From the NCBI GenBank assembly GCA_946965045.2, contig OX337237.1, forward strand, positions 2,604,001-2,668,000: a stretch of DNA of 64,000 nt, in the 5' to 3' direction. The DNA comes from Epithemia pelagica (Eukaryota > Protista > Bacillariophyta). The position numbers and the translations under genes are program-made. Within the stretch, counting starts at the first letter, position 1. Each line of letters begins with the position of its first letter. Under the pieces are notes generated by a model. That model was not told where the DNA came from and did not search any database. It saw only the letters and a program-made list of their open reading frames with translations. This document shows positions 17,140 through 54,053 of the stretch, one piece after another.

Positions 17140-17293
17140 TTACATGATCGAATTCATTGTCCTCACACCCCTCTTTTATTGTCTGAATAGACACCCCTCT
17201 TAATTGAGAAAAAATAGTCCTGATGGACCGGCCTCTGCTGAAACAAGTCGTGGGCGACCTAGTCGAAATGCTTCCGATCTAGCTCGCGGGGAC

Positions 17294-34903: not shown

Positions 34904-35626
34904 GGCACGAACGAATAACCCTCGGTCTACCTAGGTAGGTGTGTGGATTGGATGAGCCGAATCGGTCGGTTCACTTTGTTGTCACTTTGTTGCTTGGGAT
35001 TGGACTACTACAAGAGAGAATCAATCCTTGTTCTCTCTTGTCTCGACAACATGCACAAAAGCCGTTGGATATTTGCTTTCATCAATGTCCGATGCCCTGA
35101 CGCCAATTCGGGTCGACAGACAAACCTACCCCGAAAATACATGCGCGATGCGCGCGAAACATAATAGCGACTGGCTAACCTTACCGTCCGTCTACCGTTA
35201 AGTGTGGCGTGATGCCCCTTTTTCGGGTTTTCCGGTTTCGGTTCACCATCCGCCGCCCCAATCTCCACCGAAAACAAACCCAGGAAGACCATGATCGCCG
35301 AGTATCCCGTTGTACCATCCTCCCATCTGCCATCATCTTGGCTCCGGGATGATGATGTTGACGATGGAAATTGCACCGTCACCAGTGGAGCACAGACCGT
35401 TCGACACTCAAATGTTAGTCCCCATCTCAAACAAAAGGTAAGTCTTTTTCTTCCCAACATTCCCTGTCACGCTGCAGAACGACGGTTAGAGAATACACTT
35501 TTCCTGAGTGGAATTGCATGAAGCCACAAAACGCTTTTGGTTCTAATGTCTTCGTTTGATTCCCTTTGACAACACATTTTGGTTCCCTTTGACAACACAT
35601 TTTGGTACCATCTCCACATTTTAACA

Positions 35627-36179
35627 ATGAACTCTGCCCAACAGTTAGAAGACGGTAAGTTGATACTTTGTTTGCTTTTGGACAAAGTGGCCCAATCCTG
35701 CTTGCAAGTGGATACTAACACTTATTGCTTCTTCGCTTCTCGCAGACAGCCAAGTCTTCATGCAGTTCCTAATTCTGTACACAACAGACGACATCAACGA
35801 GGCAAAGACGATGATAGATTATTGGATCTCGCAATCGCAACGTTGTAGTTTGGAAACCATCAAAAACGTAATTTTTCCAGTTCTTCATGATGCTGTGGAA
35901 CAACAACCTGGAGTGTTCGCCAGTAGAAATGGTACTGAAGAAAGTACCGGGCTTAAGATGGACTGGAATGCCGCGCATTATGCTCCATATTTACGACGAG
36001 CCATGGAAAACTTGAATATGAGTCAGATGCGTGCTCTCCTTATGCGTGTCAAGGTAAAGTTGGTGGAGGAGGAGGAAAACCGAGCATCATCTCCGCCTGC
36101 AGTGCAACATGTGGAAACTCACCAAAATGCTGGTGAAGACGAACTATCGTCGTTGTCGAACTCAATGGAGGGCAACTAA
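35627..36179 (+). CDS. Small uncharacterised protein X, copy 1 (153 aa, 91-bp intron 35655-35745)
   Basis: ATGAACTCT..GACG|GTAAGT...CGCAG|ACAGC restores a frame into the 35760-36179 ORF. The same structure is present in all three copies. Confidence 0.7.
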
Positions 36180-36326
36180 GTAGTTGCCATGGGCTGCTGA
36201 TGAGCACGCGACAGACATGTTCCGCAACAGGACATGGCATTCGACATTCCACTAGAATCGAACTCAAAACTCACTAAATGTCACTTCACGAAAAATAAAG
36301 ACAAAATCTCAGCGATAATACTCTAC

Positions 36327-38923
36327 TTAGTCTTTTGCTTCATCCTCTAGAGACTTCTCTAGCTTGGATTCCTTCACATCAGTCAGTCTCGTGGAATACT
36401 TACTCACGCAACCCAACGTTTTCTTATACAAATCCCTCGGCTCTTTCCTAAAGGAGGATACAAAGGACGGCAACTGGGTGTTCTTGTCACTTTCTTTTTG
36501 TTCCTCATGCAAAAGCTCATGGTGCATTGTAAACACATCGGCTCGTTGAAACGCTTTCTGCGACTTGGAAGCCATAACAGCCTCATAGATACCAAATTCG
36601 TCTTTATGAATGCAAAACATCTTGGGAACCAGCTTTTCTCTCAAATTGTCAACGTTGCTTGAGACGGCTTTCTTTAGCTCATCGTCCAACTTCAATGAGG
36701 ACAAGCTATCGGTTCTCTCCTTGCCGAGAACATTGTTATAGTCTGACCGTCCCAAATCCTCCCGATCTTGTCCAACGAGACACAGGAGCAACAAACCTTT
36801 TGTGATACCGGCTGAGTGAAGTTTCTTCAATGATTCAGACAGGAAGCCGTTCGCCTTCGCGGGAGACACGCTAGCTTGGTTCTTGACACTCACAAAGATG
36901 GGAATGTACTCAACCCTTCCTGACAATGCCATTGATCGGCAGGGAACCACCAAATCTGCTGCTTCCCGGTTGTTTGGACAGTATATTGCGCAAGCCTTGT
37001 TGTACAAACCCTCAAGAAATTCCGACCGCCCAAGATCGGACAATGCAACGTGGAATCTATATTGAAACAACTGTATGAAATTCACGTGACAATTTGATAT
37101 CGCATGGCCTGATTCTACGTTCGTCGGGCCATCATCCTCAGTAGCATTAGCATTTCTTGCAATCTGTTCAAGATATTGACCCAGGGCAACTGAGAATGTC
37201 TTGTAGTCAGGGTCTGCCTTCTTGCGAAGAATGTCTCCGCAAAACAACAAAAACAAAGCCGATGCCACTTCGCCGTAGTCCCCCTTGTTGGCCTCGCATA
37301 TACTGTTCGAAAAAAGCTCGCCCATTTTAGCGGACCAAAAGGTCTTCTTGTTCCCAGTGATAGTCGCGTCAAGCGTACGTGGTCTCCCATTCCGTCCACC
37401 TTGGATAGCAAAGTCCTTGTCCATGAGTGCCATACAGATCCGGGCGCAAACAGGGTCTGGCAAGAACGTAAATGTTGCCTTAGACGGTACGTCAGACCGC
37501 TTTGGTGCCTGCTGAAACGATGTCAAGTGAGCGTAGCCTTTGGAGACTAGTCTTGACACCATGGCAACAGATGTCTGTCCCATCTGGATGCGAGTTCCCA
37601 GTACACTGAGACAAGACGCCAAAGGCATTGTCGTATCTCCCAGGATAATCTTGTTGGCAATTTCAAAGATCTCGTCAGTGCCCAACCTTTTCTCCTTGTG
37701 CATTGCTGCGAACAAGGGACGACCATATCGAATCATATTGTCGTATTCACTTTCACTCATGCTTTGAGGAGTCCTAACGTCGGGATGGTTTGCAAGACAT
37801 CCCATCGTTCGGAACATGAAGAACGGGTCAAACGGTGTTTCCCCCTTCTCGAAATATGCGCCCTTGGTGTTAAGAACTCTCGTGTCTGACGACTGTGCCT
37901 CAACTTCGGGGAAAAAATTGGTCAATGACGTCGTTGTACCCGCCAACACAGCAACAATTCGATATTTCTTCTTGTCATTAGAAATTTCAGGGTTCTCTCG
38001 AAGAATCCATCGCAGCACACGAAACAAGTAGCCGCCGTGCTTTGCCAGGTGTTGAGCTTCGTCGAAAAACAGAATAACCTCGGTCGGATCATTTTCGTTC
38101 GGTTCCCCATTTGGATTTGATTTTGAAATTGCCTCGGCGCACTGATGGAAAATCATATTGCGAAACATATCTCGTGCTTTATTCAAACCATCTTCTCCAG
38201 GCAGGGTGTCAGGAATGCAGTAAGAGGTATCAAATGTATCTTTTTCAAGGTTGGCGTGGTCCTTCGATGATAGTAAAATAGTTCGGCATGCAATGTTCTT
38301 TGTCTCAAGTTGTTTCTTTGCCTCAATCATTAGTCTCGATTTGCCCGTTCCACTAGATTGCACTATTGTCAAGGTCGGTGAAAGATATGTATCACGGATT
38401 TTGGCATCCTTGTGCCATTGTCTCACCTTGTCCAATTCTTGCAAGAAAAGTTTCAGGTCCTCGTCGTGAGCAAGGCGCAGGCTGAATCCAAAGTCATAGG
38501 GAGCCATTCTCAAAGAGTCCAAGGGGACGGATCGACGATGGACTTCTTCGCCAGTCTTTAAGAAGTGAGACAAGTCGATCTTCAACTCCTCTTGAACTGA
38601 ATTAAAAATGTCATCTGATCTTTTGAGATCCTGAATTTGGATTCCACCAAGCAAACGTTTAACGTGCCCTCTTGATCCACCGAAAGGTTATCCTTATTCC
38701 ATTGTTCATCGTAGTAGTCTGTGAAGGTTTCATCATCCTTCGGAGCCTTCGGTGATTTACTAGTCATGGACAAGACAACCATGGAATGGCGACGACAATG
38801 ACCAGGATGGTGCAACGGACGGGTCGTGGTGGTTCGTGGTGTCGACCCCTGCCAAGCGTGACAGGGTGACACGGCAAGCAAGAGCATCGTCCAAAACGAC
38901 AAAACAAGAAACAAAGCATTCAT
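36327..38923 (-). pseudogene. Crinkler-like NTPase-REase, copy 1, frameshifted near 38655
   Basis: Near-identical to copy 2 but split into ORFs 38582-39283 and 36327-38654. Confidence 0.8.
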
Positions 38924-39672
38924 GATGAATGAAATCGGTGTTTTCGTGGATAGATTCTTGACTTGTTGGTTGTTGTTGGAGAGAATCTCAAGACGTTGTC
39001 GTTGTTTGTCTCTTGGTGGTGGTGAGAAGGAGAGTGGTTCTTGTTTTGTTCTGTGGAGGGAGGTTTGTCGTTGAAGAGAGGGAGAGGAGGAGAACTCGTT
39101 GGATTCTCTTTTGGCTTGTTGGTTGCAGTGTCTCGTCGTTGTTGGTCGTTGTCTTAGAGCGGTTCTTTTGCTCTCAAGGAAGGTTGTTGTTCTTGTTGTT
39201 CTTGTAGTTGTTGCAAGAGAGTCTCTAGAAACTCGCTCGCTCGCCTTGTCTTGTTTGGAGTGCCCAAAGGGATGACACCACAACTATGCTATCCTAAATC
39301 GTGGCTATGCACACTGAACCGTATTGAGTACGGGAGTTAACAATGCGAATACGACATATTTTCGACGATCACGACATTCTCGCGACAGTCATCACGACAC
39401 ACAAGAGACAAAGTCGACTTGCTCCCATAGTCAGACGACATCGTCACGACAATCACGACGACAGGTAGATTAACGCTATATAATCTATATAAGCACAGGT
39501 CTCGCGTTCCGTCTTCTATCCACCGAAAGCAATCCCCGCAACAGCATCACCATGGCCAAGGGACGATTCAACAAAGGTAATGAATGCTTTCCGATGATCA
39601 CTGGCTTCTACCAGACAAAGAGTTGACCATGCTAGTAAACTATTTGGTTTTCCTACTTGTCATTTTTGTCTC

Positions 39673-39969
39673 CTAAAACCTATCATCTTCAACATTGTCG
39701 GGATCCTCGAAGCAAGGCTCTATCGGGTCTCCACTGTCAATGATTTTTTCTTCCTGCTCAATTGCGTCGTCAGGTAAGTCTCCATCTTCAATGAAATCAT
39801 AAGCCTTTTTCCCGGTTTGATCAAAACTTGGGAATTTCAAATGCAGCATTTTAGATAGTTTGTACCGGTTCCAATTGTTGGAATGCCACTTTCTGTGAGC
39901 CACAACTGTATGTGCGACGTCAAGCTCGAAATCCTGGATTTCCCAAGTGTCGTGTCCGTCACCGTGCAT
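39673..39969 (-). CDS. Short acidic hypothetical ORF (98 aa), copy 1
   Basis: ATG-initiated, D/E-rich, 21 bp downstream of the PLD-like stop. Supported only by ORF presence in a recent duplicate. Confidence 0.3.
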   Translation of the reverse strand: MHGDGHDTWEIQDFELDVAHTVVAHRKWHSNNWNRYKLSKMLHLKFPSFDQTGKKAYDFIEDGDLPDDAIEQEEKIIDSGDPIEPCFEDPDNVEDDRF

Positions 39970-39990
39970 ACCCTTGAGTGGTACGATCCA

Positions 39991-40875
39991 TTAGGATGCT
40001 TGGGATTGGGTCGTAGCTTTGCTGGCTCGCTTTCTGGCTGAAACTTGAGCATTTATGGCATCATACCGAGCTTTCCGTTTCGATCCTTCCGGCGCGGCAT
40101 AGTAAAGTTCGTTGTATATCCGCTCTGCTTGGTTTGTCAAAACCAAGTCATTGCCCCACATCTCGTCGAACGTTGTGATACTCTCCTGCTGGGTGGCGAT
40201 CACCTCAAAATTCCCAGCTCGGGCCAGGTTTGAGAGATTGTAGCTCCCTAGCACAGTGTATGTGTCAGTAATGACTGATTTTACATCAAGGGATGCTTTG
40301 CTGCTGCTATTGGCCACAAAAGTAGACATGGCGACCAACCGAATTTCGACATTCTCCAAGAGAGCCCTCTTGTTTCCAATCTCAGTGACCCACTTCGCAA
40401 GAGCTTTTCTGGTGTCCGTGGAACGATGCAGGAGAACTCGAATTGTTTTTGAGCCGCCATGATGTGAGAGGAGATCAATGGCATACATATCGGTCAATGA
40501 GTAAGCAGTGACTCGAACAATGGAATTGTCTGGGGCGGATTCTAGAACCGCGGCAATGGCCCGGAGTGGATGGTCGCTGCGGGGAGTTTCATCCACTCTC
40601 TCGATGCAGTCTCTTGGACGTGGCTTCGCATAGTACGACAAGTTCTTGGTAGTCAAGCGGACAGCGGAATGGAACTTTTCGAGACGCTGCGGATCGTAAC
40701 AGAAGCCAGACCGATGATTCTCGTCGAGTTGTTGAATGTAACGATCGACATGCGGCAGAAATTCAGCTTCACCGTCCTCTTCGTCGCGTTCCTGTTCCGC
40801 GCCCTCCTCCTCTCTGCTGATATCTTCCAGTTCTTCCTCCACTGGCAAAGACGGAGGTGTATCAATTCCATCCAT
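39991..40875 (-). CDS. PLD/Nuc-like nuclease homologue (single HKD, His replaced by Asp), copy 1
   Basis: IVRVTAYSLTD, IRVLL, DVKSVITD-x5-GSYN and NFE give a single-domain PLD-nuclease layout. Confidence 0.75.
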   Translation of the reverse strand: MDGIDTPPSLPVEEELEDISREEEGAEQERDEEDGEAEFLPHVDRYIQQLDENHRSGFCYDPQRLEKFHSAVRLTTKNLSYYAKPRPRDCIERVDETPRSDHPLRAIAAVLESAPDNSIVRVTAYSLTDMYAIDLLSHHGGSKTIRVLLHRSTDTRKALAKWVTEIGNKRALLENVEIRLVAMSTFVANSSSKASLDVKSVITDTYTVLGSYNLSNLARAGNFEVIATQQESITTFDEMWGNDLVLTNQAERIYNELYYAAPEGSKRKARYDAINAQVSARKRASKATTQSQAS

Positions 40876-42082
40876 GGGTCTTGCTCTGCTGTTCCCTTGA
40901 CACCACACCTACTAAGGGCTGGGGATACCGATCCATGTACATCTAAGTAGGCTCAGTACAAAAGCTACGTAGAGTACATAAAATCAAATAGTACACGTCA
41001 CGCCGGAAATGGTCGGAATTTCAAACAAAAAATGCAAAAACGCTCGACAATGATGGCGAGATCCGGTGACGCCGTATGCATTCACCCATGCATCGCATAA
41101 ACATCCAACCACCGTAAGTCCTTTGCCCTTACCTTTGAAATTGTTGTCTGAAATTACAGAAGATTTGCCAAGTTGGCTGAAAAGGTACGCTCATTTTTTT
41201 TCTGCAGTGATGAAATCGAACGACCGCCCTAACTCATTCATTTTTCAAGGGTGCCTGAATCAAAGTGAAAGCAAAGTTGCTCTAGTAGTAAAGATTCTTA
41301 TTGTAAAAGTGATTCAGGCAGGCTCAATTGTTCAGGAAGTTATTGCCATGGGGATGATGACTTCCATCATTGTCGAATGATGGCTTCCGGATTGCACCTT
41401 TTCTATCGGTGGCAAGTTTACGACGTGCGACTCGGTGTGACCATCCGCCCCACTTCTTACACAGACGAAAAAAGTACTACGTAGGTTAATGTACTGAGCC
41501 TACTTAGATGTACATGGATCGGTATCCCCAGCCCTTACCTTGCTACTTTCGTCAGACAGACGGACAGACAGAGAACGTCATCGTACGGTTTACACTACTA
41601 TTGGGAGAAAAAGGCTCTTTTCTATCTCATCCTTGCTCACTTTTTCATTTGGCCTCAAAACCAAAAAGACCATCGGAAGACTGTTGCCTTTTTTTCGGGT
41701 TTTCCGGGTAGCCCTCCGCCTGTTCGCCCAAAACCGAAGGAAGACCATGATCGCCGAGTATCCCGTTGTACCATCCTCCCATCTGCCATCATCTTGGCTC
41801 CGGGATAATGATGTTGACGATGGAAATTGCACCGTCACCAGTGGAGCACAGACCGTTCGACACTCAAATGTTAGTCCCCATCTCAAACAAAAGGTGCGTC
41901 GTTTTCTTCCCAACATTCCCTGTCACGCTGCAGAACGACGGTTAGAGAATACACTTTTCCTGAGTGGAATTGCATGAAGCCACAAAACGCTTTTGGTTCT
42001 AATGTCTTCGTTTGATTCCCTTTGACAACACATTTTGGTTCCCTTTGACAACACATTTTGGTACCATCTCCACATTTTAACA

Positions 42083-42632
42083 ATGAACTCTGCCCAACAG
42101 TTAGAAGACGGTAAGTTGATACTTTGTTTGCTTTTGGACAAAGTGACCCAATCCTGCTTGCAAGTGGATACTAACACTTATTGCTTCTTCGCTTCTCGCA
42201 GACAGCCAAGTCTTCATGAAGTTCCTAATTCTGTACACAACAGACGACATCAACGAGGCAAAGAGGATGATAGATTATTGGATCTCGCAATCGCAACGTT
42301 GTAGTTTGGAAACCATCAAAAACGTAATTTTTCCAGTTCTTCATGATGCTGTGGAACAACAACCTGGAGTGTTCGCCAGTAGAAATGGTACTGAAGAAAG
42401 TACCGGGCTTAAGATGGACTGGAATGCCGCGCATTATGCTCCATATTTACGACAAGCCATGGAAAACTTGAATATGAATCAGATGCGTGCTCTCCTTATG
42501 CGTGTCAAGGTACAGTTGGTGGAGGAGGAGAAAAACCGAGCATCATCTCCGCCTGCAGTGCAACATGTGGAAACTCACCAAAATGCTGAAGACGAACTAT
42601 CGTCGTTGTCGAACTCAATGGAGGGCAACTAA
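42083..42632 (+). CDS. Small uncharacterised protein X, copy 2 (152 aa, intron 42111-42201)
   Basis: Same exon/intron structure as copy 1. Confidence 0.7.
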
Positions 42633-42779
42633 GTAGTTGCCATGGGCTGCTGATGAGCACGCGACAGACATGTTCCGCAACAGGACATGGCATTCGACAT
42701 TCCACTAGAATCGAACTCAAAACTCACTAAATGTCACTTCACGAAAAATAAAGACAAAATCTCAGCGATAATACTCTAC

Positions 42780-45380
42780 TTAGTCTTTTGCTTCATCCTC
42801 TAGAGACTTCTCTAGCTTGGATTCCTTCACATCAGTCAGTCTCGTGGAATACTTACTCACGCAACCCAACGTTTTCTTATACAAATCCCTCGGCTCTTTC
42901 CTAAACGAGGATACAAAGGACGGCAACTGGGTGTTCTTGTCACTTTCTTTTTGTTCCTCATGCAAAAGCTCATGGTGCATTGTAAACACATCGGCTCGTT
43001 GAAACGCTTTCTGCGACTTGGAAGCCATAACAGCCTCATAGATACCAAATTCGTCTTTATGAATGCAAAAAATCTTGGGAACCAGCTTTTCTCTCAAATT
43101 GTCAACGTTGCTTGAGACGGCTTTCTTTGGCTCATCGTCCAACTTCAATGAGGACAAGCTATCGGTTCTCTCCTTGCCGAGAACATTGTTATAGTCTGAC
43201 CGTCCCAAATCCTCCCGATCTTGTCCAACGAGACACAGGAGCAACAAACCTTTTGTGATACCGGCTGAGTGAAGTTTCTTCAATGATTCAGACAGGAAGC
43301 CGTTCGCCTTCGCGGGAGACACGCTAGCTTGGTTCTTGACACTCACAAAGATGGGAATGTACTCAACCCTTCCTGACAATGCCATTGATCGGCAGGGAAC
43401 CACCAAATCTGCTGCTTCCCGGTTGTTTGGACAGTATATTGCGCAAGCCTTGTTGTACAAACCCTCAAGAAATTCCGACCGCCCAAGATCGGACAATGCA
43501 ACGTGGAATCTATATTGAAACAACTGTATGAAATTCACGTGACAATTTGATATCGCATGGCCTGATTCTACGTTCGTCGGGCCATCATCCTCAGTAGCAT
43601 TGGCATTTCTTGCAATCTGTTCAAGATATTGACCCAGGGCAACTGAGAATGTCTTGTAGTCAGGGTCTGCCTTCTTGCGAAGAATGTCTCCGCAAAACAA
43701 CAAAAACAAAGCTGATGCCACTTCGCCGTAGTCCCCCTTGTTGGCCTCGCATATACTGTTCGAAAAAAGCTCGCCCATCTTAGCGGACCAAAAGGTCTTC
43801 TTGTTCCCAGTGATAGTCGCGTCAAGCGTACGTGGTCTCCCATTCCGTCCACCTTGGATAGCAAAGTCCTTGTCCATGAGTGCCATACAGATCCGGGCGC
43901 AAACAGGGTCTGGCAAGAACGTAAATGTTGCCTTAGACGGTACGTCAGACCGCTTTGGTGCCTGCTGAAACGATGTCAAGTGAGCGTAGCCTTTGGAGAC
44001 TAGTCTTGACACCATGGCAACAGATGTCTGTCCCATCTGGATGCGAGTTCCCAGTACACTGAGACAAGACGCCAGAGGCATTGTCATATCTCCCAGGATA
44101 ATCTTGTTGGCAATTTCAAAGATCTCGTCAGTGCCCAACCTTTTCTCCTTGTGCATTGCTGCGAACAAGGGACGACCATATCGAATCATATTGTCGTATT
44201 CACTTTCACTCATGCTTTGAGGAGTCCTAACGTCGGGGTGGTTTGCAAGACATCCCATCGTTCGGAACATGAAGAACGGGTCAAACGGTGTTTCCCCCTT
44301 CTCGAAATATGCGCCCTTGGTGTTAAGAACTCTCGTGTCTGACGACTGTGCCTCAACTTCGGGGAAAAAATTGGTCAATGACGTCGTTGTACCCGCCAAC
44401 ACAGCAACAATTCGATATTTCTTCTTGTCATTAGAAATTTCAGGGTTCTCTCGAAGAATCCATCGCAGCACACGAAACAAGTAGCCGCCGTGCTTTGCCA
44501 GGTGTTGAGCTTCGTCGAAAAACAGAATAACCTCGGTCGGATCATTTTCGTTCGGTTCCCCATTTGGATTTGATTTTGAAATTGCCTCGGCGCACTGATG
44601 GAAAATCATATTGCGAAACATATCTCGTGCTTTATTCAAACCATCTTCTCCAGGCAGGGTGTCAGGAATGCAGTAAGAGGTATCAAATGTATCTTTTTCA
44701 AGGTTGGCGTGGTCCTTCGATGATAGTAAAATAGTTCGGCATGCAATGTTCTTTGTCTCAAGTTGTTTCTTTGCCTCAATCATTAGTCTCGATTTGCCCG
44801 TTCCACTAGATTGCACTATTGTCAAGGTCGGTGAAAGATATGTATCACGGATTTTGGCATCCTTGTGCCATTGTCTCACCTTGTCCAATTCTTGCAAGAA
44901 AAGTTTCAGGTCCTCGTCGTGAGCAAGGCGCAGGCTGAATCCAAAGTCATAGGGAGCCATTCTCAAAGAGTCCAAGGGGACGGATTGACGATGGACTTCT
45001 TCGCCAGTCTTTAAGAAGTGAGACAAGTCGATCTTCAACATTTTTTGAATCCCATAAAAAATGTAATCTTCTTCATCATTGAGACTCTCAATTGGCATTT
45101 CAAGATTAACACTTAAGCGTTTCTCTTGCTGCACCGTGAGGTTATCCTTTTTCCACCGTTTTTCATCGTAGTAGTCTTTGAGGGTTTTGTCACCCTTCGG
45201 AGCCTTCGGTGATTTACTAGTCATGGACAAGACAACCATGGAATGGCGACGACAATGACCAGGATGGTGCAACGGACGGGTCGTGGTGGTTCGTGGTGTC
45301 GACCCCTGCCAAGCGTGACAGGGTGACACGGCAAGCAAGAGCATCGTCCAAAACGACAAAACAAGAAACAAAGCATTCAT
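42780..45380 (-). CDS. Crinkler(CR)-like P-loop NTPase + REase-fold protein with signal/transit presequence, intact copy (866 aa)
   Basis: Walker A QSSGTGKS, Walker B ILFFDEAQ, LAGTTT, YGRPLF, and REase-like ADLVVP...IFVSVKN. N-terminus MNALFLVLSFWTMLLLAVSPCHA|W. Confidence 0.8.
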   Translation of the reverse strand: MNALFLVLSFWTMLLLAVSPCHAWQGSTPRTTTTRPLHHPGHCRRHSMVVLSMTSKSPKAPKGDKTLKDYYDEKRWKKDNLTVQQEKRLSVNLEMPIESLNDEEDYIFYGIQKMLKIDLSHFLKTGEEVHRQSVPLDSLRMAPYDFGFSLRLAHDEDLKLFLQELDKVRQWHKDAKIRDTYLSPTLTIVQSSGTGKSRLMIEAKKQLETKNIACRTILLSSKDHANLEKDTFDTSYCIPDTLPGEDGLNKARDMFRNMIFHQCAEAISKSNPNGEPNENDPTEVILFFDEAQHLAKHGGYLFRVLRWILRENPEISNDKKKYRIVAVLAGTTTSLTNFFPEVEAQSSDTRVLNTKGAYFEKGETPFDPFFMFRTMGCLANHPDVRTPQSMSESEYDNMIRYGRPLFAAMHKEKRLGTDEIFEIANKIILGDMTMPLASCLSVLGTRIQMGQTSVAMVSRLVSKGYAHLTSFQQAPKRSDVPSKATFTFLPDPVCARICMALMDKDFAIQGGRNGRPRTLDATITGNKKTFWSAKMGELFSNSICEANKGDYGEVASALFLLFCGDILRKKADPDYKTFSVALGQYLEQIARNANATEDDGPTNVESGHAISNCHVNFIQLFQYRFHVALSDLGRSEFLEGLYNKACAIYCPNNREAADLVVPCRSMALSGRVEYIPIFVSVKNQASVSPAKANGFLSESLKKLHSAGITKGLLLLCLVGQDREDLGRSDYNNVLGKERTDSLSSLKLDDEPKKAVSSNVDNLREKLVPKIFCIHKDEFGIYEAVMASKSQKAFQRADVFTMHHELLHEEQKESDKNTQLPSFVSSFRKEPRDLYKKTLGCVSKYSTRLTDVKESKLEKSLEDEAKD

Positions 45381-46129
45381 GATGAATGAAATCGGTGTTT
45401 TCGTGGATAGATTCTTGACTTGTTGGTTGTTGTTGGAGAGAATCTCAAGACGTTGTCGTTGTTTGTCTCTTGGTGGTGGTGAGAAGGAGAGTGGTTCTTG
45501 TTTTGTTCTGTGGAGGGAGGTTTGTCGTTGAAGAGAGGGAGAGGAGGAGAACTCGTTGGATTCTCTTTTGGCTTGTTGGTTGCAGTGTCTCGTCGTTGTT
45601 GGTCGTTGTCTTAGAGCGGTTCTTTTGCTCTCAAGGAAGGTTGTTGTTCTTGTTGTTCTTGTAGTTGTTGCAAGAGAGTCTCTAGAAACTCGCTCGCTCG
45701 CCTTGTCTTGTTTGGAGTGCCCAAAGGGATGACACCACAACTATGCTATCCTAAATCGTGGCTATGCACACTGAACCGTATTGAGTACGGGAGTTAACAA
45801 TGCGAATACGACATATTTTCGACGATCACGACATTCTCGCGACAGTCATCACGACACACAAGAGACAAAGTCGACTTGCTCCCATAGTCAGACGACATCG
45901 TCACGACAATCACGACGACAGGTAGATTAACGCTATATAATCTATATAAGCACAGGTCTCGCGTTCCGTCTTCTATCCACCGAAAGCAATCCCCGCAACA
46001 GCATCACCATGGCCAAGGGACGATTCAACAAAGGTAATGAATGCTTTCCGATGATCACTGGCTTCTACCAGACAAAGAGTTGACCATGCTAGTAAACTAT
46101 TTGGTTTTCCTACTTGTCATTTTTGTCTC

Positions 46130-46426
46130 CTAAAACCTATCATCTTCAACATTGTCGGGATCCTCGAAGCAAGGCTCTATCGGGTCTCCACTGTCAATGA
46201 TTTTTTCTTCCTGCTCAATTGCGTCGTCAGGTAAGTCTCCATCTTCAATGAAATCATAAGCCTTTTTCCCGGTTTGATCAAAACTTGGGAATTTCAAATG
46301 CAGCATTTTAGATAGTTTGTACCGGTTCCAATTGTTGGAATGCCACTTTCTGTGAGCCACAACTGTATGTGCGACGTCAAGCTCGAAATCCTGGATTTCC
46401 CAAGTGTCGTGTCCGTCACCGTGCAT
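46130..46426 (-). CDS. Short acidic hypothetical ORF, copy 2
   Basis: Identical translation to copy 1. Confidence 0.3.
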   Translation of the reverse strand: MHGDGHDTWEIQDFELDVAHTVVAHRKWHSNNWNRYKLSKMLHLKFPSFDQTGKKAYDFIEDGDLPDDAIEQEEKIIDSGDPIEPCFEDPDNVEDDRF

Positions 46427-46447
46427 ACCCTTGAGTGGTACGATCCA

Positions 46448-47332
46448 TTAGGATGCTTGGGATTGGGTCGTAGCTTTGCTGGCTCGCTTTCTGGCTGAAA
46501 CTTGAGCATTTATGGCATCATACCGAGCTTTCCGTTTCGATCCTTCCGGCGCGGCATAGTAAAGTTCGTTGTATATCCGCTCTGCTTGGTTTGTCAAAAC
46601 CAAGTCATTGCCCCAACTCTCGTCGAACGTTGTGATACTCTCCTGCTGGGTGGCGATCACCTCAAAATTCCCAGCTCGGGCCAGGTTTGAGAGATTGTAG
46701 CTCCCTAGCACAGTGTATGTGTCAGTAATGACTGATTTTACATCAAGGGATGCTTTGCTGCTGCTATTGGCCACAAAAGTAGACATGGCGACCAACCGAA
46801 TTTCGACATTCTCCAAGAGAGCCCTCTTGTTTCCAATCTCAGTGACCCACTTCGCAAGAGCTTTTCTGGTGTCCGTGGAACGATGCAGGAGAACTCGAAT
46901 TGTTTTTGAGCCGCCATGATGTGAGAGGAGATCAATGGCATACATATCGGTCAATGAGTAAGCAGTGACTCGAACAATGGAATTGTCTGGGGCGGATTCT
47001 AGAACCGCGGCAATGGCCCGGAGTGGATGGTCGCTGCGGGGAGTTTCATCCACTCTCTCGATGCAGTCTCTTGGACGTGGCTTCGCATAGTACGACAAGT
47101 TCTTGGTAGTCAAGCGGACAGCGGAATGGAACTTTTCGAGACGCTGCGGATCGTAACAGAAGCCAGACCGATGATTCTCGTCGAGTTGTTGAATGTAACG
47201 ATCGACATGCGGCAGAAATTCAGCTTCACCGTCCTCTTCGTCGCGTTCCTGTTCCGCGCCCTCCTCCTCTCTGCTGATATCTTCCAGTTCTTCCTCCACT
47301 GGCAAAGACGGAGGTGTATCAATTCCATCCAT
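46448..47332 (-). CDS. PLD/Nuc-like nuclease homologue, copy 2
   Basis: As copy 1; one residue differs (M vs S in FDE.WGND). Confidence 0.75.
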   Translation of the reverse strand: MDGIDTPPSLPVEEELEDISREEEGAEQERDEEDGEAEFLPHVDRYIQQLDENHRSGFCYDPQRLEKFHSAVRLTTKNLSYYAKPRPRDCIERVDETPRSDHPLRAIAAVLESAPDNSIVRVTAYSLTDMYAIDLLSHHGGSKTIRVLLHRSTDTRKALAKWVTEIGNKRALLENVEIRLVAMSTFVANSSSKASLDVKSVITDTYTVLGSYNLSNLARAGNFEVIATQQESITTFDESWGNDLVLTNQAERIYNELYYAAPEGSKRKARYDAINAQVSARKRASKATTQSQAS

Positions 47333-48235
47333 GGGTCTTGCTCTGCTGTTCCCTTGACACCACACCTACTAAGGGCTGGGGATACCGATCCATGTACATC
47401 TAAGTAGGCTCAGTACAAAAGCTACGTAGAGTACATAAAATCAAATAGTACACGTCACGCCGGAAATGGTCGGAATTTCAAACAAAAAATGCAAAAACGC
47501 TCGACAATGATGGCGAGATCCGGTGACGCCGTATGCATTCACCCATGCATCGCATAAACATCCAACCACCGTAAGTCCTTTGCCCTTACCTTTGAAATTG
47601 TTGTCTGAAATTACAGAAGATTTGCCAAGTTGGCTGAAAAGGTACGCTCATTTTTTTTCTGCAGTGATGAAATCGAACGACCGCCCTAACTCATTCATTT
47701 TTCAAGGGTGCCTGAATCAAAGTGAAAGCAAAGTTGCTCTAGTAGTAAAGATTCTTATTGTAAAAGTGATTCAGGCAGGCTCAATTGTTCAGGAAGTTAT
47801 TGCCATGGGGATGATGACTTCCATCATTGTCGAATGATGGCTTCCGGATTGCACCTTTTCTATCGGTGGCAAGTTTACGACGTGCGACTCGGTGTGACCA
47901 TCCGCCCCACTTCTTACACAGACGAAAAAAGTACTACGTAGGTTAATGTACTGAGCCTACTTAGATGTACATGGATCGGTATCCCCAATCCCCAGCCCTT
48001 ACCTTGCTACTTTCGTCAGACAGACGGACAGACAGAGAACGCCCTCGTACGGTGTACGGGTGCGATTGGGGGGGTACCTACCCCCCAGCGGGGGCGAGTA
48101 TTTACCGGTGAATTCCTATACTCACCCCCACGGCGCGTCCCTCGAAATCGGCGATTTTCCAACTTTGAGACAAAACCACATTCTGCACAACACATTCATC
48201 ACGGAGCCAACCTTGTCGTCCATATAACAACCATC

Positions 48236-50380
48236 ATGGACCCTCCCAATCCCATTCGACCACATAACATCGTTCCTTCGGCTGTTACAGAACATTCGAC
48301 GCACTTGGATCCGCACCCTTTCCATCCGACGACGTCCTCCCAGCACACTGAATCTGACACGAACCGAACAGCCAACAACGAAACGGATGTCCCATCCTAT
48401 GAAGCCACCATCGATGCCCTTTCCTCATTCAATGCCTTCTCGACCATCCCTTGTGATCCCTTGTCCAACGTTGGTGACCATCGGAAACTCTCCGAGTCCA
48501 TAATGATGTGCTTCAGCGATTGGCATGGCAAGACTGCGCGACAATGGCAAATCGAAGCTTGCGAAGAAGTTCTTTGCCGGCACCTCCACCGCCCGTCTTC
48601 TGCCCTTTTGCGTCCTCTGCTGCTTGTCCGGTCTACAGGCGGCGGAAAGTCGGCTGTAAGGGATGTCAGTGGTTTTCTCTGTGGCGGCATTACGCTAACC
48701 ATAGTCCCTCTGCTAAGCTTGTCAGCCGACCAAACGGCAAAGCTCTCCCAACTCGCAAGCGATCAACAATTAACCGGTCGGCTACATATTTTTAACCTCG
48801 ACGTACTCCGATCCAAGTCTCTCAATGACACTCTTCGTTCCAATCTGGAGAACTTATCGTACAAGTCAGCAACCAGAGTGTCGTTGTTCTCCTCCCCTCA
48901 GAAATTGACCAACGACCCCTTGTGGCAACAAACGATCTGTACTTGCTTCCGGAACGGTACCCTCCGGTTGATTGCGATCGACGAATGCCACCTTTATGCC
49001 TCCCATGGTGTGGAGTTCCGATCGGAATTCAGCGACTTGAAGAAGGTTCTTTTCCCAGTTGCCAACCGGCGGATCATCAAAGAACCCGTCCCAGTTCTTT
49101 TCATGACAGCTACCGCTTCCTCTTTGATGCTCCACGATCTTGAATCATTGACCGGTCTCTCTTTTCACCCAACCGACGACCTTGTGTGGCCGCGACACCA
49201 TTCCGGTGTCCAAAGACGCAACATCTTTCTTGATTTGACGTTCCAAGACTCGCCCCTTCGGCGAATCAAAAGGGACGTTGTAAAAACCTGCCACGCCTCT
49301 GGAGGTCGGAAAGTTATGGTTTATTCCAATTCGAGAAAGGCCATCACTCATCTCTACGAGCAAACCCGTTCTCATCTGAATATGCTCGGCATACAGAAAG
49401 ACCTATTGCTCGTTCACGGCCTTATGTTCCGTGAACAAAAGTTCCATAACACGGAGCTGTTTGTGGGGAAGCCACTAGTGGAGGAATGCCCCAGCTCCAA
49501 ACGGATCCTGCGCTTCGACCCAGTGGCTTACTTTGCAACTGCGGGTACTTCGAGCTCAGGTGTAGACTGCCATGAAGTTGACCGTGTGTTGTTTCATGGA
49601 TTTCCTCAGTCCATAGAGGATCTCCTACAATGTTCTGGGCGATGTGGCAGAGGCCCGGACGCCACTGCCCATAATTCTTCGTTCTGTCTCATAGTCAGTC
49701 TGAACAGCCTTGTGTCCCTTCTTACTCGGATCTTTATCTTACCCAAGTATGCGACAGAACAAAACACCAAGCAACCCCCTTCCAGCGAAGCAACAAACTC
49801 TCTTTTCTCTCCTGAAGCTCTTGCTATCCGTCAATGGTATAATGTCCGCCGAATTCTTGCTATCTTGTGCTTGGATGATGGTCAGTGTGTCCATTACCGT
49901 CTTGAACAAGAGATGCTTCATCCTCATAGCGATTCGGTTTGTGATCTACCAACGCATTGCGCTGGGGCCTGCTGGCGCTGCCGTACACCTCGGATTGCCA
50001 CACCTTTTGATGCTCCTTTCAATATCCAACAACTCAAACGATACCTCATTATGATGTTCATTACCCAAAAGCTTCCCCCCTCCCAACTGCTCCTACACAA
50101 GGACGTCTTCCTTGATGCCGTGATTGGATTCGAAACCGTAAATGCTGAAGGAGCCTCGACACGAGTCTTTCCTAAATCGGTGTTTGGTGTCACCACCAAG
50201 CATGTCATTAAGCAACGAACGAAAGCGCTCATTTTGAAGTGTTTCTGTGCTGGGATCCTTGAACCCGAAGTAGATGGTTCCAAGTTGCTCGCTAAACTCG
50301 GGTACTGCTCCAATGGCAATCCACGCCTAAATGACCCAATGATCTGGCAAGGATTCAAGGAACTCGATCCATCGGTCTAA
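48236..50380 (+). CDS. RecQ-like superfamily 2 helicase (714 aa)
   Basis: Motifs I STGGGKS, Ia IVPLLSL, II IDECH, III MTATA, IV VYSNSR, V ATAGTSSSGVD and VI QCSGRCGR. Cys cluster CAGACWRC (RQC-like Zn site). Confidence 0.92.
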   Translation: MDPPNPIRPHNIVPSAVTEHSTHLDPHPFHPTTSSQHTESDTNRTANNETDVPSYEATIDALSSFNAFSTIPCDPLSNVGDHRKLSESIMMCFSDWHGKTARQWQIEACEEVLCRHLHRPSSALLRPLLLVRSTGGGKSAVRDVSGFLCGGITLTIVPLLSLSADQTAKLSQLASDQQLTGRLHIFNLDVLRSKSLNDTLRSNLENLSYKSATRVSLFSSPQKLTNDPLWQQTICTCFRNGTLRLIAIDECHLYASHGVEFRSEFSDLKKVLFPVANRRIIKEPVPVLFMTATASSLMLHDLESLTGLSFHPTDDLVWPRHHSGVQRRNIFLDLTFQDSPLRRIKRDVVKTCHASGGRKVMVYSNSRKAITHLYEQTRSHLNMLGIQKDLLLVHGLMFREQKFHNTELFVGKPLVEECPSSKRILRFDPVAYFATAGTSSSGVDCHEVDRVLFHGFPQSIEDLLQCSGRCGRGPDATAHNSSFCLIVSLNSLVSLLTRIFILPKYATEQNTKQPPSSEATNSLFSPEALAIRQWYNVRRILAILCLDDGQCVHYRLEQEMLHPHSDSVCDLPTHCAGACWRCRTPRIATPFDAPFNIQQLKRYLIMMFITQKLPPSQLLLHKDVFLDAVIGFETVNAEGASTRVFPKSVFGVTTKHVIKQRTKALILKCFCAGILEPEVDGSKLLAKLGYCSNGNPRLNDPMIWQGFKELDPSV

Positions 50381-50423
50381 CAAACTTTCTTAGTATTAAC
50401 TACGTATTACATCGTCCATTTTT

Positions 50424-53400
50424 TCACGTTTCTATGTCCTCCTTGTACGAAGCCAGCATATCCATGCAACGGTCTAGACGATTTGCAACGCCTGTTGTCT
50501 CCCTTATATTCTCTGTCCATTCCACGTTCGACTGATCCTCCTCCATACCTTCCAGCCTATGGTAAAGCTTGTAGCGCAGGAAATGATGGTCTCTTTCCTT
50601 TCGCGCTGCATCCCATTGAAGGGACGTTACAACTTGCTTTTCCCCCATACGTTCCACGGCTCCTGCAATAAAATCTGTCGTTGCCATCCTATTCATCTCC
50701 ACAACCTTCATTCCCTTTATTGATGATTTCTCACGTAGTGTCTCCTTTGGTGAATCTTTCTTATCCACGGAATACTCTGTCTCTGGAGCACCGTCACTTC
50801 CCTCATCATTATCATCGTTGTCATCATCTTCGTTCGGAATTTCGTCTGCTTCCGCCTCCATATCATCAACTTGGGTTTCTTGCACTTCATCCTCGTCTCT
50901 TTCGTCTTGGACTTCGTCATGTTCCATGTTGCTTGTTGCCTCGGTATCCTCCATGGTAACTGTTGTATCAACAACAGTCTCTTCGTCCTTGTAGTAACAA
51001 GGAGCATCCTTCTCGACTTCGACGAATACCGATTCGTCGTCACTAAAGCACGTTAGTTCCTGGATTGTCGATGAACCATCGTCATCCATTACTTCAGCCA
51101 AGTCTATCTCTGAGTTCTCATCTGTTGTATCGCCCTCTTCTGCCCCATTCTTGCTCCCCTCCTCTTCATCTGGACCCTTGTCTTCATCTTCCTTGCACCG
51201 TTTAGATTTCCTCATGTTACGCATCATTGCGTCAACTTTCACTAGAACATACCTGTCCACCGCGTCGTTTTCAATTCGACCTTCGCCATTGCGCCTCACT
51301 TTCTTATGTACCTCCATTGTCGTCGCATCCAAAGCCCTCCAAAAGCGGTCTTTGTCGACCACAATATTGAGGTTCTCCCTTACATCGTGACATTTCGCAA
51401 GCGTCAAAATTTCTGTCACTAGAACACGATTCAATCGACTGCTTGGACGAGTTGTTGTTTTATTGCGTTGTCCTGGGTCCGCCAGTGGTCCGGTCTCAGT
51501 AGTAGGCGTGTCAATGTCAAACGAATTCTCTAACGACCGTTCGTTGAATTCGTACTCAGCGTCGGCTCTCGTGCGAGTGTAGAATTCCACGAAATGCTTT
51601 GCCCTCTGGCAGGCAGTGAGCATTTTGGAAACACGAACAAACGAAGCCTCAGTTCCGTTATGGTTCATACCTTTGAAAAAAGGCATTAAGCGCTCCATAA
51701 TCTGGTCAAGCGCACTCTCTTTCTGGAACGTGTAAGGTGTCCCTTTCTTTTGAAGTTTCGTTCTGTTGAGCCTGATGAGTTGCAGGATAGAAATAGGGAT
51801 TCGATGATAGTACATCTCAATAAGACGAAGCTGAGTAGCGAACGATTTATGTTTCTTTGTTGCGTAGAGTACTGGCAAATAATCAACAACAACAGCTTCC
51901 ATTGTCACCGCATCACCTTCTTGTTCTGCTTTACAAAATGCCAGGTACTTTCGCATAACAACCAGATAGTTGCATAGGTACCGGTGCAACCAGTCCTTTG
52001 TCTCACGGACTTGGCGGTGCAAATAAGCCACGTAGTCGTTGGCTACAAAGATAGCCAATCCATCTGGCCCTTGTGATTTGAGGATTCGCTCAATCTTTCC
52101 AAACGTCATGGTTCTGTTGATGAAGATGTCAACCATAAGACGATCCAGTTCCTCGAAAACAATAACGGCAAGTCGATGAGCTAAACGATAGGTGTGTGAT
52201 ACATCTTGGGCATCGAGACGCTTCCATTTGAGCCTGTGCTGGAAGCACTGGAGGAAGCCTCCATAGAACAAGCGGTAAACGGAATCCAACATATGAAACC
52301 TAACATGTAGGTCTCCGTTAATGGGGACAATCCGGTGTAGGACCTGCGTGATTGCCATGGCCTGTCGGTATGCATTGCGAAATGACATGGTTTTAGCGTC
52401 TGTGATTGCCATGACATCATCAAAGAACTGGAAGATGCGGTCCAGCGACAGCCCATCCCCAACCAAGAACAACCACTTCTTCTCCCATCCATCCACAGGC
52501 GCATAAATTTGGTCGGCTTCCTTGAAATACAAAAGACCATGTAGCACCATGAAATCTAATAAAATACCGGAAGCTCCAACTTTTGTGGTCTCGTCTAAAA
52601 CGGACACTGGTAAGATGAGCAATTCTGCAGGGGCAGGTTCATGACGCCAGGACCGCACAACACGTCTTGGGAACTGTCGTGCCATTTCAAACAGGTTTTC
52701 CTCACGATTTTTCCTTAGGCCATTCATGGCTGCCACAATAGCAGCCTTGCATGGATGAAGGGCGAATTCGGTAGGTTGTAGTGTATAATCAGACCGTTGT
52801 CCTGGCTTTCTTTTTGTTGACAGGTAACGCTTAACATTCCAAAGCTCTCTGCAAGTTGTGTTGAGTTGTTGGTATACCCGGACTCTCTTGCCAGAACAGT
52901 CGAACGGGTTGCCGTCCTTTTGCAAGTCTTCTTTATACGTCCCATGATATATGGATTGAATGACTTCCGCCGTTTGGAGGTCGAGTAATTGTTCCAAGGC
53001 AGGCATTTGGTAGGGTGAAGGGATGGCCTGTTGGAGGTAAGTTAATGCTGGCCGTTCGGTAAACGAATATACCCAGTCAGGGAAGATTGCCATGTGCATC
53101 GACATTAAGAATCTGGCTGTGACTTTGGTATAAATAGTGCTCTGTCCCTGCTGGAATTGGAGCTTCCGACCATCTTGTAGATTATCGAACACACACAACA
53201 GATGTGTCACACGTCGAATTGCTAGCTTTGTTCGTTGGTCATAGGATGAAAGCCACTCTTCTACCCTGCGTTCCATCGTTCGTTTTGAAACAGAGATTCC
53301 TAGCCACACAGGAATCTGTGTAGCTAAGAGTGGATGTCCACAAGCATACTGAGCGAGGGAGAAGATCATACCAAAAGGGACCAACCGATGATTGTTTGTC

Positions 53401-54053
53401 TTTCGAAGCTTCATGACAAATTGGAAGAACACGTCCAATGTGAAACGTGGACGCATGAAAATTCGCTCGTTTTCCGTAAGTTCCTCTTCGAGCTTTTTCG
53501 TGTAGCCACTAATCCCCATTAGAGTGTTGAATTGTTGGGGAAGCATTGTCTCGAAGTCCTTTGCAAATTGCCGAAGTTCATATTCCGATAGGAACTTTTC
53601 AAATACATTATTGAAGCGTCCAAAACAATCTTCAAGGCGCCTCATAACCCTCTTGTCAATGACTTCGCAAAAGGGCTGGACCGTAGATGGTTCTATGAGG
53701 GGCGGAGGAGGAATCGTCGCGGCGTGGTCTCGAAGCTGTTTAAGCTCTTCGTTGTGTAGAACCTTTTGCTGGGCAGCGAGGGCATTTGATTGTAGGTGTT
53801 GCCAGACACCTCGTAATTCTGCGAGCATAAATCGATCCCCTGTTGTTTCTTGCACGAGCCTATGAAGAAGAGTGGACCGATTGTCCCCTGCGTCTTTCAA
53901 AGCATTGAAAGTTGCAAGCCAGGGCCGTTCGGGATGGAAGTCGGCTTGGACAAATATGGCTTGGGGGTAACGAAACAACTCAAACCAGGAGAGATGTTCC
54001 TCAATACAATCAGAGGGGGGGGGGGGAGGAGACGCTGAAATCCATCGACCCAA
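50424..54053 (-). CDS. Academ-type putative DDE transposase, C-terminal 1209 aa
   Basis: Candidate catalytic motifs VFDNLQ, LVGDGLS, NGDLH..FH and ALDQIMER, plus a long acidic tail. Lies inside TIRs. Confidence 0.75.
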   Translation of the reverse strand: MGRWISASPPPPPSDCIEEHLSWFELFRYPQAIFVQADFHPERPWLATFNALKDAGDNRSTLLHRLVQETTGDRFMLAELRGVWQHLQSNALAAQQKVLHNEELKQLRDHAATIPPPPLIEPSTVQPFCEVIDKRVMRRLEDCFGRFNNVFEKFLSEYELRQFAKDFETMLPQQFNTLMGISGYTKKLEEELTENERIFMRPRFTLDVFFQFVMKLRKTNNHRLVPFGMIFSLAQYACGHPLLATQIPVWLGISVSKRTMERRVEEWLSSYDQRTKLAIRRVTHLLCVFDNLQDGRKLQFQQGQSTIYTKVTARFLMSMHMAIFPDWVYSFTERPALTYLQQAIPSPYQMPALEQLLDLQTAEVIQSIYHGTYKEDLQKDGNPFDCSGKRVRVYQQLNTTCRELWNVKRYLSTKRKPGQRSDYTLQPTEFALHPCKAAIVAAMNGLRKNREENLFEMARQFPRRVVRSWRHEPAPAELLILPVSVLDETTKVGASGILLDFMVLHGLLYFKEADQIYAPVDGWEKKWLFLVGDGLSLDRIFQFFDDVMAITDAKTMSFRNAYRQAMAITQVLHRIVPINGDLHVRFHMLDSVYRLFYGGFLQCFQHRLKWKRLDAQDVSHTYRLAHRLAVIVFEELDRLMVDIFINRTMTFGKIERILKSQGPDGLAIFVANDYVAYLHRQVRETKDWLHRYLCNYLVVMRKYLAFCKAEQEGDAVTMEAVVVDYLPVLYATKKHKSFATQLRLIEMYYHRIPISILQLIRLNRTKLQKKGTPYTFQKESALDQIMERLMPFFKGMNHNGTEASFVRVSKMLTACQRAKHFVEFYTRTRADAEYEFNERSLENSFDIDTPTTETGPLADPGQRNKTTTRPSSRLNRVLVTEILTLAKCHDVRENLNIVVDKDRFWRALDATTMEVHKKVRRNGEGRIENDAVDRYVLVKVDAMMRNMRKSKRCKEDEDKGPDEEEGSKNGAEEGDTTDENSEIDLAEVMDDDGSSTIQELTCFSDDESVFVEVEKDAPCYYKDEETVVDTTVTMEDTEATSNMEHDEVQDERDEDEVQETQVDDMEAEADEIPNEDDDNDDNDEGSDGAPETEYSVDKKDSPKETLREKSSIKGMKVVEMNRMATTDFIAGAVERMGEKQVVTSLQWDAARKERDHHFLRYKLYHRLEGMEEDQSNVEWTENIRETTGVANRLDRCMDMLASYKEDIET

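Follow-up and report, generated by a model that had tools for sequence, protein, structure and literature searches.

Modules in which a nucleoside triphosphatase (NTPase) is joined to a nuclease are known from prokaryotic defence and transposition as well as from the Crinkler effectors of oomycetes. Among the organelle DNA nucleases of plants and green algae are the DPD1 exonuclease and, in Chlamydomonas, a chloroplast DNase specific to mating type. Here we describe a gene that may bring these themes together, found in a 64,000-nucleotide stretch of DNA from the diatom Epithemia pelagica (contig OX337237.1, positions 2,604,001–2,668,000; hereafter the window). The gene, located at 42780–45380 of the window on the minus strand, encodes a multidomain protein of the AAA+ class with a probable, non-canonical PD-(D/E)xK domain at its C-terminus, and its N-terminus shows every sequence hallmark of the bipartite presequences that address diatom proteins to the plastid.

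The closest described architecture is that of the Phytophthora Crinkler (CR or CRN) proteins, most of whose C-termini consist of an NTPase, a helix-turn-helix (HTH) and a restriction endonuclease (REase) domain, the proposed role of the REase being action on DNA under regulation by the NTPase; CR effectors of this C-terminal architecture are secreted (PMC5289972). For targeting, the reference is the ASAFAP-type bipartite presequence, the plastid transit peptides of which are hydroxylated and net positive with few acidic residues (PMC4329603). The high-confidence ASAFind class has F, Y, W or L at the +1 position (PMC12136025), the ASAFind score drops sharply when this residue is not F (PMC4329603), and proteins of the periplastidic compartment lack such +1 residues (PMC12136025, PMC4329603).

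The target, a nuclear gene from a pennate diatom, is intact and comprises an open reading frame (ORF) of 866 codons and a stop codon (at 42780–42782); the frame is open from 45740, and its first in-frame ATG lies at 45380. A counterpart 99.8% identical to it lies on contig ctg1359l of ENA assembly ERZ21939226, and the ORF is unbroken in both assemblies. No ATG occurs in any frame in the 434 nt upstream of the first methionine (M1), where about 3.9 per 400 nt would be expected from composition. Because this leader is free of ATG, a transcript starting anywhere within it would meet M1 first.

A first-pass annotation of the sequence had proposed a signal peptide of 23 residues, a W at +1 and an acid-free stretch rich in S, T, R and H; a hydrophobic N-terminus of this length, the W and the acid-free stretch were all confirmed. 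Scanning for hydrophobicity together with a −3/−1 heuristic placed a signal-like hydrophobic core at residues 4–18 and a C-H-A site directly before W24, which is one of the F/W/Y/L residues of the plastid class. Residues 24–63 contain no D or E but seven K/R (four R, three K), four H, 11 S/T (six T, five S) and five P, a composition like that of transit peptides. As a positive control within the window we used the gene for the photosystem II assembly factor YCF48/HCF136, the product of which shares 76% identity with its Phaeodactylum tricornutum counterpart. Its N-terminus runs from a hydrophobic segment through T-N-A to F and an S/R-rich acid-free stretch, followed by a twin-arginine-like lumen signal; the presence of this presequence implies that the organism uses the ASAFAP design. 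The target resembles such proteins in having a signal peptide-like segment, small residues at −3 and −1, an aromatic +1 residue and an acid-free, hydroxylated, basic stretch. It differs from them in carrying W rather than F at +1, and in that its passenger is not a photosynthetic or metabolic protein but a multicopy, NTPase-nuclease-like one, most members of whose family have no signal.

To this control can be added the recurrence of the same features in distant relatives. Among ~180 family members that start with M, ten besides the target have a signal-peptide-like N-terminus. The pattern [small]-x-[small]-[F/W] follows the hydrophobic core in 9 of the 11 signal-bearing members (target included), compared with 11% of random 19-aa segments; in the remaining two, an F comes after a site of looser form. 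Each of the ten relatives shares 28–38% identity with the target and is an uninterrupted ORF on a metagenome contig; five of them fall in one subclade, and two (P0010 and P0021) have the window's own clade as their nearest neighbours. We considered these contigs as transcript evidence and rejected that use, since they are genomic metagenome assemblies. Elsewhere in the family, the motif K[KR]x[KR] is present in the first 100 residues of 37% of full-length members, against a background of 9.5%, and these motifs, which resemble nuclear localisation signals (NLS), suggest nuclear import for many members. Taken together, the control and the distant relatives strengthen the case for a plastid-type presequence and lend independent support to plastid targeting, and we lean modestly towards actual import of the target protein into the plastid.

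To examine conservation in the body of the protein, the target was aligned with 44 relatives at 24–91% identity (45 sequences). The earlier suggestion of a Walker A/B NTPase was borne out. The target carries GTGKS at 193–197 and FFDEAQ at 287–292, and the Walker A motif QSSGxGK (190–196) and the Walker B residues D289 and E290 are invariant in all 45 sequences; with S or T at position 197, they correspond to the GxxGxGK[ST] and hhhhDE forms of the AAA+ class. An AlphaFold2 model based on this alignment (pLDDT 81, pTM 0.79) consists of a disordered segment (residues 1–55), a helical domain (64–180), a P-loop core (181–345), helices with a winged-helix-like unit (390–530), an alpha-beta domain (540–780) and terminal helices (781–866). 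Foldseek searches with the whole model returned ORC, Cdc6, CED-4, Apaf-1 and NLRC4 with probability up to 0.99, the ORC, Cdc6 and CED-4 matches having probabilities of 0.9–0.99 over about 400–520 columns (~400–430 for ORC and Cdc6). The Pfam family AAA_22 was matched by 35 of the 45 aligned members at E ≤ 0.1 (best 1.1e-8), ATPase_2 by 10, TniB by 8 and AAA_16 by 7, while the target itself gave no AAA_22 match. By motifs and predicted fold, then, the target is a member of the AAA+ class. It has in common with the ORC/Cdc6 and TniB/TnsC types (AAA_22, ATPase_2, AAA_16) and with the STAND proteins CED-4, Apaf-1 and NLRC4 a Walker A and a Walker B motif followed by a winged helix. Unlike the NLRs it lacks a repeat sensor domain and has a nuclease-like domain fused at its C-terminus, and unlike the AAA_22-type families it scores under every Pfam threshold. 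A profile of the family, when compared with PDB sequences, found nothing at E ≤ 10.

Because the ATPase dominated the fold search with the whole model, residues 520–866 were also modelled separately (pLDDT 85). The alpha-beta domain of this model has the element order helix, strand, strand, strand, helix, strand (alpha-beta-beta-beta-alpha-beta), and its best PDB matches are nearly all PD-(D/E)xK nucleases, the top fold matches being Mus81, EcoO109I, EcoT38I, EcoRI, MspJI, SfsA and Avs4 (E 7.7e-3 to 0.2). A library of viral folds gave only weak matches of REase type, the named ones at the top including a restriction endonuclease, Mrr-like proteins, endonuclease I and UL24. The two motifs from which a PD-(D/E)xK-like segment had been proposed, ADLVVP and VSVKN, are present at 657–662 and 679–683. 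In the model D658 starts one strand of a hairpin and S680-x-K682 ends the next; of the 45 sequences, 44 retain D658 and 42 retain K682. E553, D565, R568 and Q619 are also near-invariant, and E553, D565 and Q619 are conserved candidates for supplying the acid that the middle of the motif lacks; some active REases recruit a missing acid from elsewhere. The proposed resemblance to Mus81/ERCC4, type II restriction enzymes, Mrr/MspJI and Avs4 extends to the predicted core, the D at the start of one strand and the xK at the end of the next, whereas the target differs in having S in place of the middle acid, in an insertion of ~70 residues between the first helix and the sheet, and in the weakness of the matches. 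The domain proposed by the first-pass annotation is therefore plausible and its D…SxK signature conserved, and the structural check it had suggested did recover an alpha-beta domain with mostly PD-(D/E)xK nucleases at the top, yet every match is statistically weak (E ≥ 7.7e-3). An REase fold is a consistent answer rather than a proven one; the model makes the target a probable non-canonical member of the PD-(D/E)xK fold, and we put the chances that it is an active nuclease at about even.

The same annotation had called the protein Crinkler-like. The order of its domains supports the comparison, in that the predicted structure places an AAA+ core, a winged helix and an REase-like domain in the order described for CR/CRN C-termini (PMC5289972), and both families are large, fast-evolving, modular and of stramenopiles. 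The differences lie in the N-terminus, which is of plastid type or NLS-like, and in the organism, a free-living phototroph. The ubiquitin-like Crinkler header with its LxLFLAK-type motif is absent: no Pfam match was found at E ≤ 1, and residues 1–55 are disordered in the model and lead into a helical domain. No CRN-named protein occurred among the named search matches (the best 150 of 1,833 profile matches are listed without names). Since the header is absent, the target cannot be filed as a Crinkler, and kinship was compared by architecture only. By analogy, the protein may work like an NTPase-HTH-REase module, with architecture alone in common with the Crinklers. As regards the DPD1 exonuclease and the Chlamydomonas DNase, the target would have the place of action and the substrate, organelle DNA, in common with them; these nucleases have unrelated folds or unidentified genes, and no sequence or structural link to them was found.

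A comparison of paralogous loci (L001–L004, L006 and L007) shows that the presequence belongs to a discrete 5' module of 558 bp, which consists of the CAA-rich leader and the codons for residues 1–53. This module is 100% identical in the sister copy of the gene (copy A, below), 97–99% identical in L006 and L007, and absent from L001–L004, so that at least five paralogs keep the leader and presequence open at 97–100% identity. From window positions 45219–45224 to the 3' end, L001 and L004 match the target at 96–97% identity; in L001, 540 bp of unrelated sequence replaces the module, and the similarity of L002 and L003 to the target also stops at the module junction. Two 5' types therefore exist, with a junction at residue ~54 that coincides with the end of the presequence. 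Beyond the module, an upstream element is common to both types. Each copy of it contains three exact occurrences of TGTCGTGA within 83 bp; the window as a whole has 13 matches to this motif where 3.45 would be expected by chance, six of the 13 lie in the two upstream elements, and the repeats are a candidate shared promoter motif. The first-pass annotation had read the 5' region as a captured host promoter and targeting segment, citing its microsatellite-like composition. That the segment is a discrete module, swapped in sibling genes, agrees with this; however, it is common to at least five paralogs, no donor was found, and the CAA composition, although real, is no proof, being non-specific: short CAA-type matches occur at about ten places in both halves of the window. 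The search for a donor comprised a word search with residues 1–63, which returned nothing (its candidates were limited to proteins of 476–1515 aa, and the pipeline often calls internal starts), and a BLAST comparison with short words, in which the 558-bp module matched the window and L001–L004 only through low-complexity sequence of CAA type.

Directly downstream of the junction lies a second variable segment, a hypervariable cassette (residues 54–128) that belongs to the helical domain near the N-terminus. The two tandem units at the locus differ by 72 substitutions, 45 of which fall within 45000–45249. Between cassette types, the proportion of synonymous differences (pS) is 0.20–0.27 and that of nonsynonymous differences (pN) 0.18–0.24, giving a pN/pS of about 1, while elsewhere pS is ~0.03 and pN ~0.013. 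The cassette is also found in L001, L006 and L007, in paralogs that are otherwise ~99% identical, and all combinations of cassette types with 5' types were seen. Such a pattern points to paralogs that have undergone gene conversion while variants that are old or evolve fast persisted in the cassette, which is a possible determinant of specificity.

The target belongs to a very large, diatom-expanded family, and we hold its assignment to this family and architecture with high confidence. A word search found 87 relatives, including proteins of Cylindrotheca closterium and Nitzschia/MMETSP transcripts, the latter showing that relatives of the target are transcribed. When 1.84 billion cluster representatives were searched with a profile, 1,833 of them matched at E ≤ 1e-3 and 405 at the stricter E ≤ 1e-30. 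The only named matches outside diatoms are hypothetical proteins of basidiomycetes, which have the region from Walker B to the sensor in common with the family (hhalign probability 98.7%). Clustering at 90% identity around the closest relative groups 16 members, which lie on three contigs of a single assembly; the genome holds at least 16 near-identical paralogs. Paralogs at 77–78% identity adjoin genes for a proteasome protein, VPS11 and a glycosyltransferase, one of them within a segmental duplication of ~9 kb. Comparison of paralogs gave a pN/pS of 0.3–0.6 outside the cassette, and P0004 and several members of the cluster are truncated. In the literature, we found no description of a diatom family of this size (1,833 cluster representatives) or of members with plastid presequences. 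P0004, in L004, also carries, relative to L001, an insertion of ~4.6 kb near its 5' end (L004 3174–7808), with ~78 bp present on both sides, which holds a 781-aa ORF with no Pfam match.

The family combines a variable N-terminal module with a helical domain, an AAA+ ATPase of ORC/Cdc6/TniB type, a winged helix and a PD-(D/E)xK-like domain. We propose that the AAA+ module would bind and hydrolyse NTP and, like its relatives by fold, serve on DNA as an oligomeriser or a switch that depends on nucleotide, and would control the C-terminal domain, which would bind DNA and probably cut it, as proposed for CR modules (PMC5289972). In the subgroup with presequences, the protein would enter the endoplasmic reticulum and then the plastid stroma, where its substrate would be plastid DNA; by swapping N-terminal modules, the family appears to send a single enzymatic core to more than one compartment that contains DNA. 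The many copies, some of them pseudogenes, the mosaic nature of the hypervariable cassette and a purifying selection that is no more than moderate suggest a conflict-type role, either in defence or selfish, rather than housekeeping, and this is the step of the explanation that we regard as weakest. The roles raised by the first-pass annotation, in the degradation of plastid DNA, in inheritance bias or as a selfish toxin, are speculative. The whole combination, of an ATPase-regulated probable nuclease, a plastid presequence as a swappable address and a conflict-type role, seems to us as apt to be right as wrong. A more far-reaching version is rather improbable: that in an ATP-gated nuclease family recombination shuffles nuclear and plastid address modules together with a recognition cassette, the plastid members policing or eliminating plastid DNA.

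Several observations weigh against the interpretation of the target as a plastid-addressed nuclease. As regards the address, the n-region of the signal-like segment has no basic residue, W is a rarer +1 residue than F, the gene call P0214 of an automatic public pipeline begins at M48, and sibling paralogs with the other 5' type have no presequence. As regards the enzyme, the target has no match in Pfam (E ≤ 1), NCBIfam, PADLOC or PDB sequences (phmmer), the residue at position 680 is never acidic (41 of the 45 sequences have S there, three have Q and one has N), all REase-type fold matches are weak (best E 7.7e-3, TM below 0.3), and the C-terminal domain could bind DNA without cutting it. If translation began at M48 or later, or from a spliced upstream exon, the protein would have no targeting signal and be nuclear or cytosolic, as most of the family would be, and the apparent presequence would be an untranslated low-complexity leader. 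The start chosen for P0214 would agree with this, as would the divergence of sibling paralogs upstream of residue ~54 and the AG that precedes the junction in both 5' types, which is compatible with a shared splice acceptor; the scarcity of T and G in the leader may by itself explain why the frame is open for 120 codons above M1. As an automatic product, however, the pipeline call is not evidence. Moreover, no frame has an ATG in the 434 nt before M1, the hydrophobic core, −3/−1 site, aromatic +1 residue and acid-free stretch co-occur in frame, and ten distant relatives show this combination within one uninterrupted ORF each. We judge a downstream or spliced start unlikely. Alternatively, the signal peptide could work but lead to retention in the secretory pathway or to export, the target being a secreted nuclease-type effector and W24 a coincidence. 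CR effectors with the same C-terminal architecture are secreted (PMC5289972), W is a minority residue at +1, and ASAFind scores fall sharply without F (PMC4329603). Against this, F or W stands at +1 in nine of the 11 signal-bearing members under a strict −3 rule and in all 11 under a loose one, compared with the 11% background, and is followed in the target by 40 residues that are acid-free, net positive and hydroxylated, as in plastid transit peptides (PMC4329603); an ATP-dependent enzyme would also be out of place outside the cell. Secretion thus appears improbable.

The two remaining alternatives concern the enzyme itself. The C-terminal domain could be an inactive module of REase fold that binds DNA or a ligand, making the target an ATP-dependent DNA-binding protein, sensor or remodelling factor in any location. 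A middle motif residue that is S, Q or N but never D or E and the weak fold matches are what such a domain would show, and inactive REase domains attached to NTPases exist as Pfam families, one of which, NA-iREase, weakly matched a neighbouring ORF. Yet D658, K682, E553, D565, R568 and Q619 are near-invariant across sequences as little as 24% and as much as 91% identical, which exceeds the usual need of a purely structural role, and active REases with an acid recruited from another position exist; a non-cutting domain is in our view a somewhat doubtful possibility, to be kept in mind. Finally, segmental duplication could have carried the target along as a copy of a repeat-associated gene that has no function and is decaying, as the frameshift in its sister copy A, the truncation of P0004 and several cluster members and the transposon-rich region might suggest. 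This we consider very unlikely, given an 866-codon ORF that is intact in two assemblies, a pN/pS of 0.3–0.6 outside the cassette, intact motifs of catalytic type throughout and transcription of relatives in MMETSP data.

If the plastid presequence works, the target would be a nucleus-encoded, ATP-regulated, nuclease-like protein in a secondary plastid, and a concrete candidate for plastid-DNA processes in diatoms. The policing of plastid DNA, if true, could serve for example in defence against invading DNA, control of plastid genome copy number or biased plastid inheritance, and would represent an organelle-directed nuclease system, innate-immunity-like or selfish, in a eukaryotic alga. The locus also shows, within one genome, what appears to be a complete targeting peptide as a recombining module, in that the core is found with one or the other 5' module and the break falls exactly where the presequence ends, which bears on how proteins acquire organelle targeting. 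The coordinates of the features discussed here are given in Table 1.

Table 1. Features of the target gene and its locus (window coordinates; residues refer to the 866-aa product).
Feature	Position	Strand	Basis or remark
Target gene, copy B: 866-aa ORF and stop codon	42780–45380	−	ORF list; AF2 model
Signal-peptide-like segment, residues 1–23, C-H-A before W24	45312–45380	−	hydrophobicity scan, −3/−1 pattern; disordered in model
Transit-peptide-like stretch, residues 24–63	45192–45311	−	composition; design as in YCF48 of the window
Hypervariable cassette, residues 54–128, part of N-terminal helical domain	44997–45221	−	substitution clustering
AAA+-type P-loop NTPase core, residues 181–345	44346–44840	−	invariant motifs, Foldseek, AAA_22 in relatives
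Walker A	44790–44813	−	
Walker B	44511–44531	−	
Helical lid and winged-helix-like region, residues 390–530	43791–44213	−	model secondary structure
REase-like alpha-beta domain, residues 540–780	43041–43763	−	conservation, C-terminal model, weak fold matches
D658	43407–43409	−	
S680-x-K682	43335–43343	−	
CAA-rich leader without ATG	45381–45777	−	with residues 1–53 forms the 5' module, 45220–45777 (558 bp)
Upstream element, candidate promoter	45778–46032 (copy A counterpart 39321–39575)	−	84% identity with paralogs of the other 5' type
Tandem unit A	35276–41593		98.6% identity to unit B over 6.3 kb
Tandem unit B: target gene, 138-aa ORF, 98-aa ORF, PLD-like ORF	41731–48057		
Copy A, broken sister of target gene	36327–38923	−	DNA-level comparison with copy B
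PLD-like 305-aa ORF, directly upstream of target in each unit	46448–47365 (unit B); 39991–40908 (unit A)	−	
YCF48/HCF136 photosystem II assembly factor gene	24481–25737	−	PSII_BNR, E 1.9e-124

The target gene sits in a 6.4-kb tandem duplication, the units of which (A and B) are 98.6% identical over 6.3 kb. Copy A differs from copy B by 50 substitutions and five indel runs, of which four have lengths that three does not divide; its frame consists of two separate ORFs, and the identical condition is found in the second assembly (ERZ21939226). The PLD-like ORF of each unit matches PLDc_2 (E 9e-4) and DrmC (E 4e-3) weakly, both below the cut-offs, and has D-V-K where an HKD motif would be expected, so that it may be a non-catalytic protein of PLD fold. 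In L007 a PLD-like ORF (L007 7890–8779) also lies upstream of a presequence-type paralog, but it is broken. A fixed partnership between the target and this neighbour was rejected, the PLD-like ORF being found beside only some of the presequence-type copies. Next after it in unit B comes the 98-aa ORF at 46130–46426. The 138-aa ORF, convergent with the 3' end of the target, is present in all three units (42216–42632 on the plus strand, 35760–36176 and 56334–56753), counting a diverged third unit; no family matches were found for it. The protein of its third copy is only 38% identical, while the DNA just upstream (41634–42224 versus 55786–56342) is 87% identical.

The first-pass annotation had implied a division of the window into host genes and a foreign element. 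This is not supported: the whole window is eukaryotic nuclear DNA of a pennate diatom with ordinary transposons, carries WD40, TAZ, ankyrin and riboflavin-kinase genes, and is ~99.8% identical, though not identical, to the 2.06-Mb contig ctg1359l of ERZ21939226; at other loci, the family stands amid housekeeping genes. A foreign or viral element was accordingly rejected, given the match to a diatom contig, the paralogs among housekeeping genes and amplification by tandem segmental duplication.

The transposons include a Ty1/copia retrotransposon at 10452–17467, with an RVT_2 ORF at 12889–17139 and identical 174-bp direct repeats at 10452–10625 and 17294–17467; a further pair of repeats, 98% identical, lies at 3376–3582 and 17492–17698. 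Between tandem unit B and the start of the diverged third unit stands a terminal inverted repeat (TIR) transposon of 7,647 bp (48077–55723), whose 64-nt terminal inverted repeats are 81% complementary and which has GGGGTA at both flanks, a likely 6-bp target-site duplication. Its ORFs are a DEAD/Helicase_C ORF at 48236–50380 on the plus strand and, on the minus strand, a DUF6589 ORF at 50424–54053 and another at 54010–55593. A 335-aa ORF at 61236–62240 on the minus strand falls in a cluster at 90% identity with 61 members over many contigs of ERZ21939226 (representative 1,132 aa) and is probably a fragment of a high-copy mobile element.

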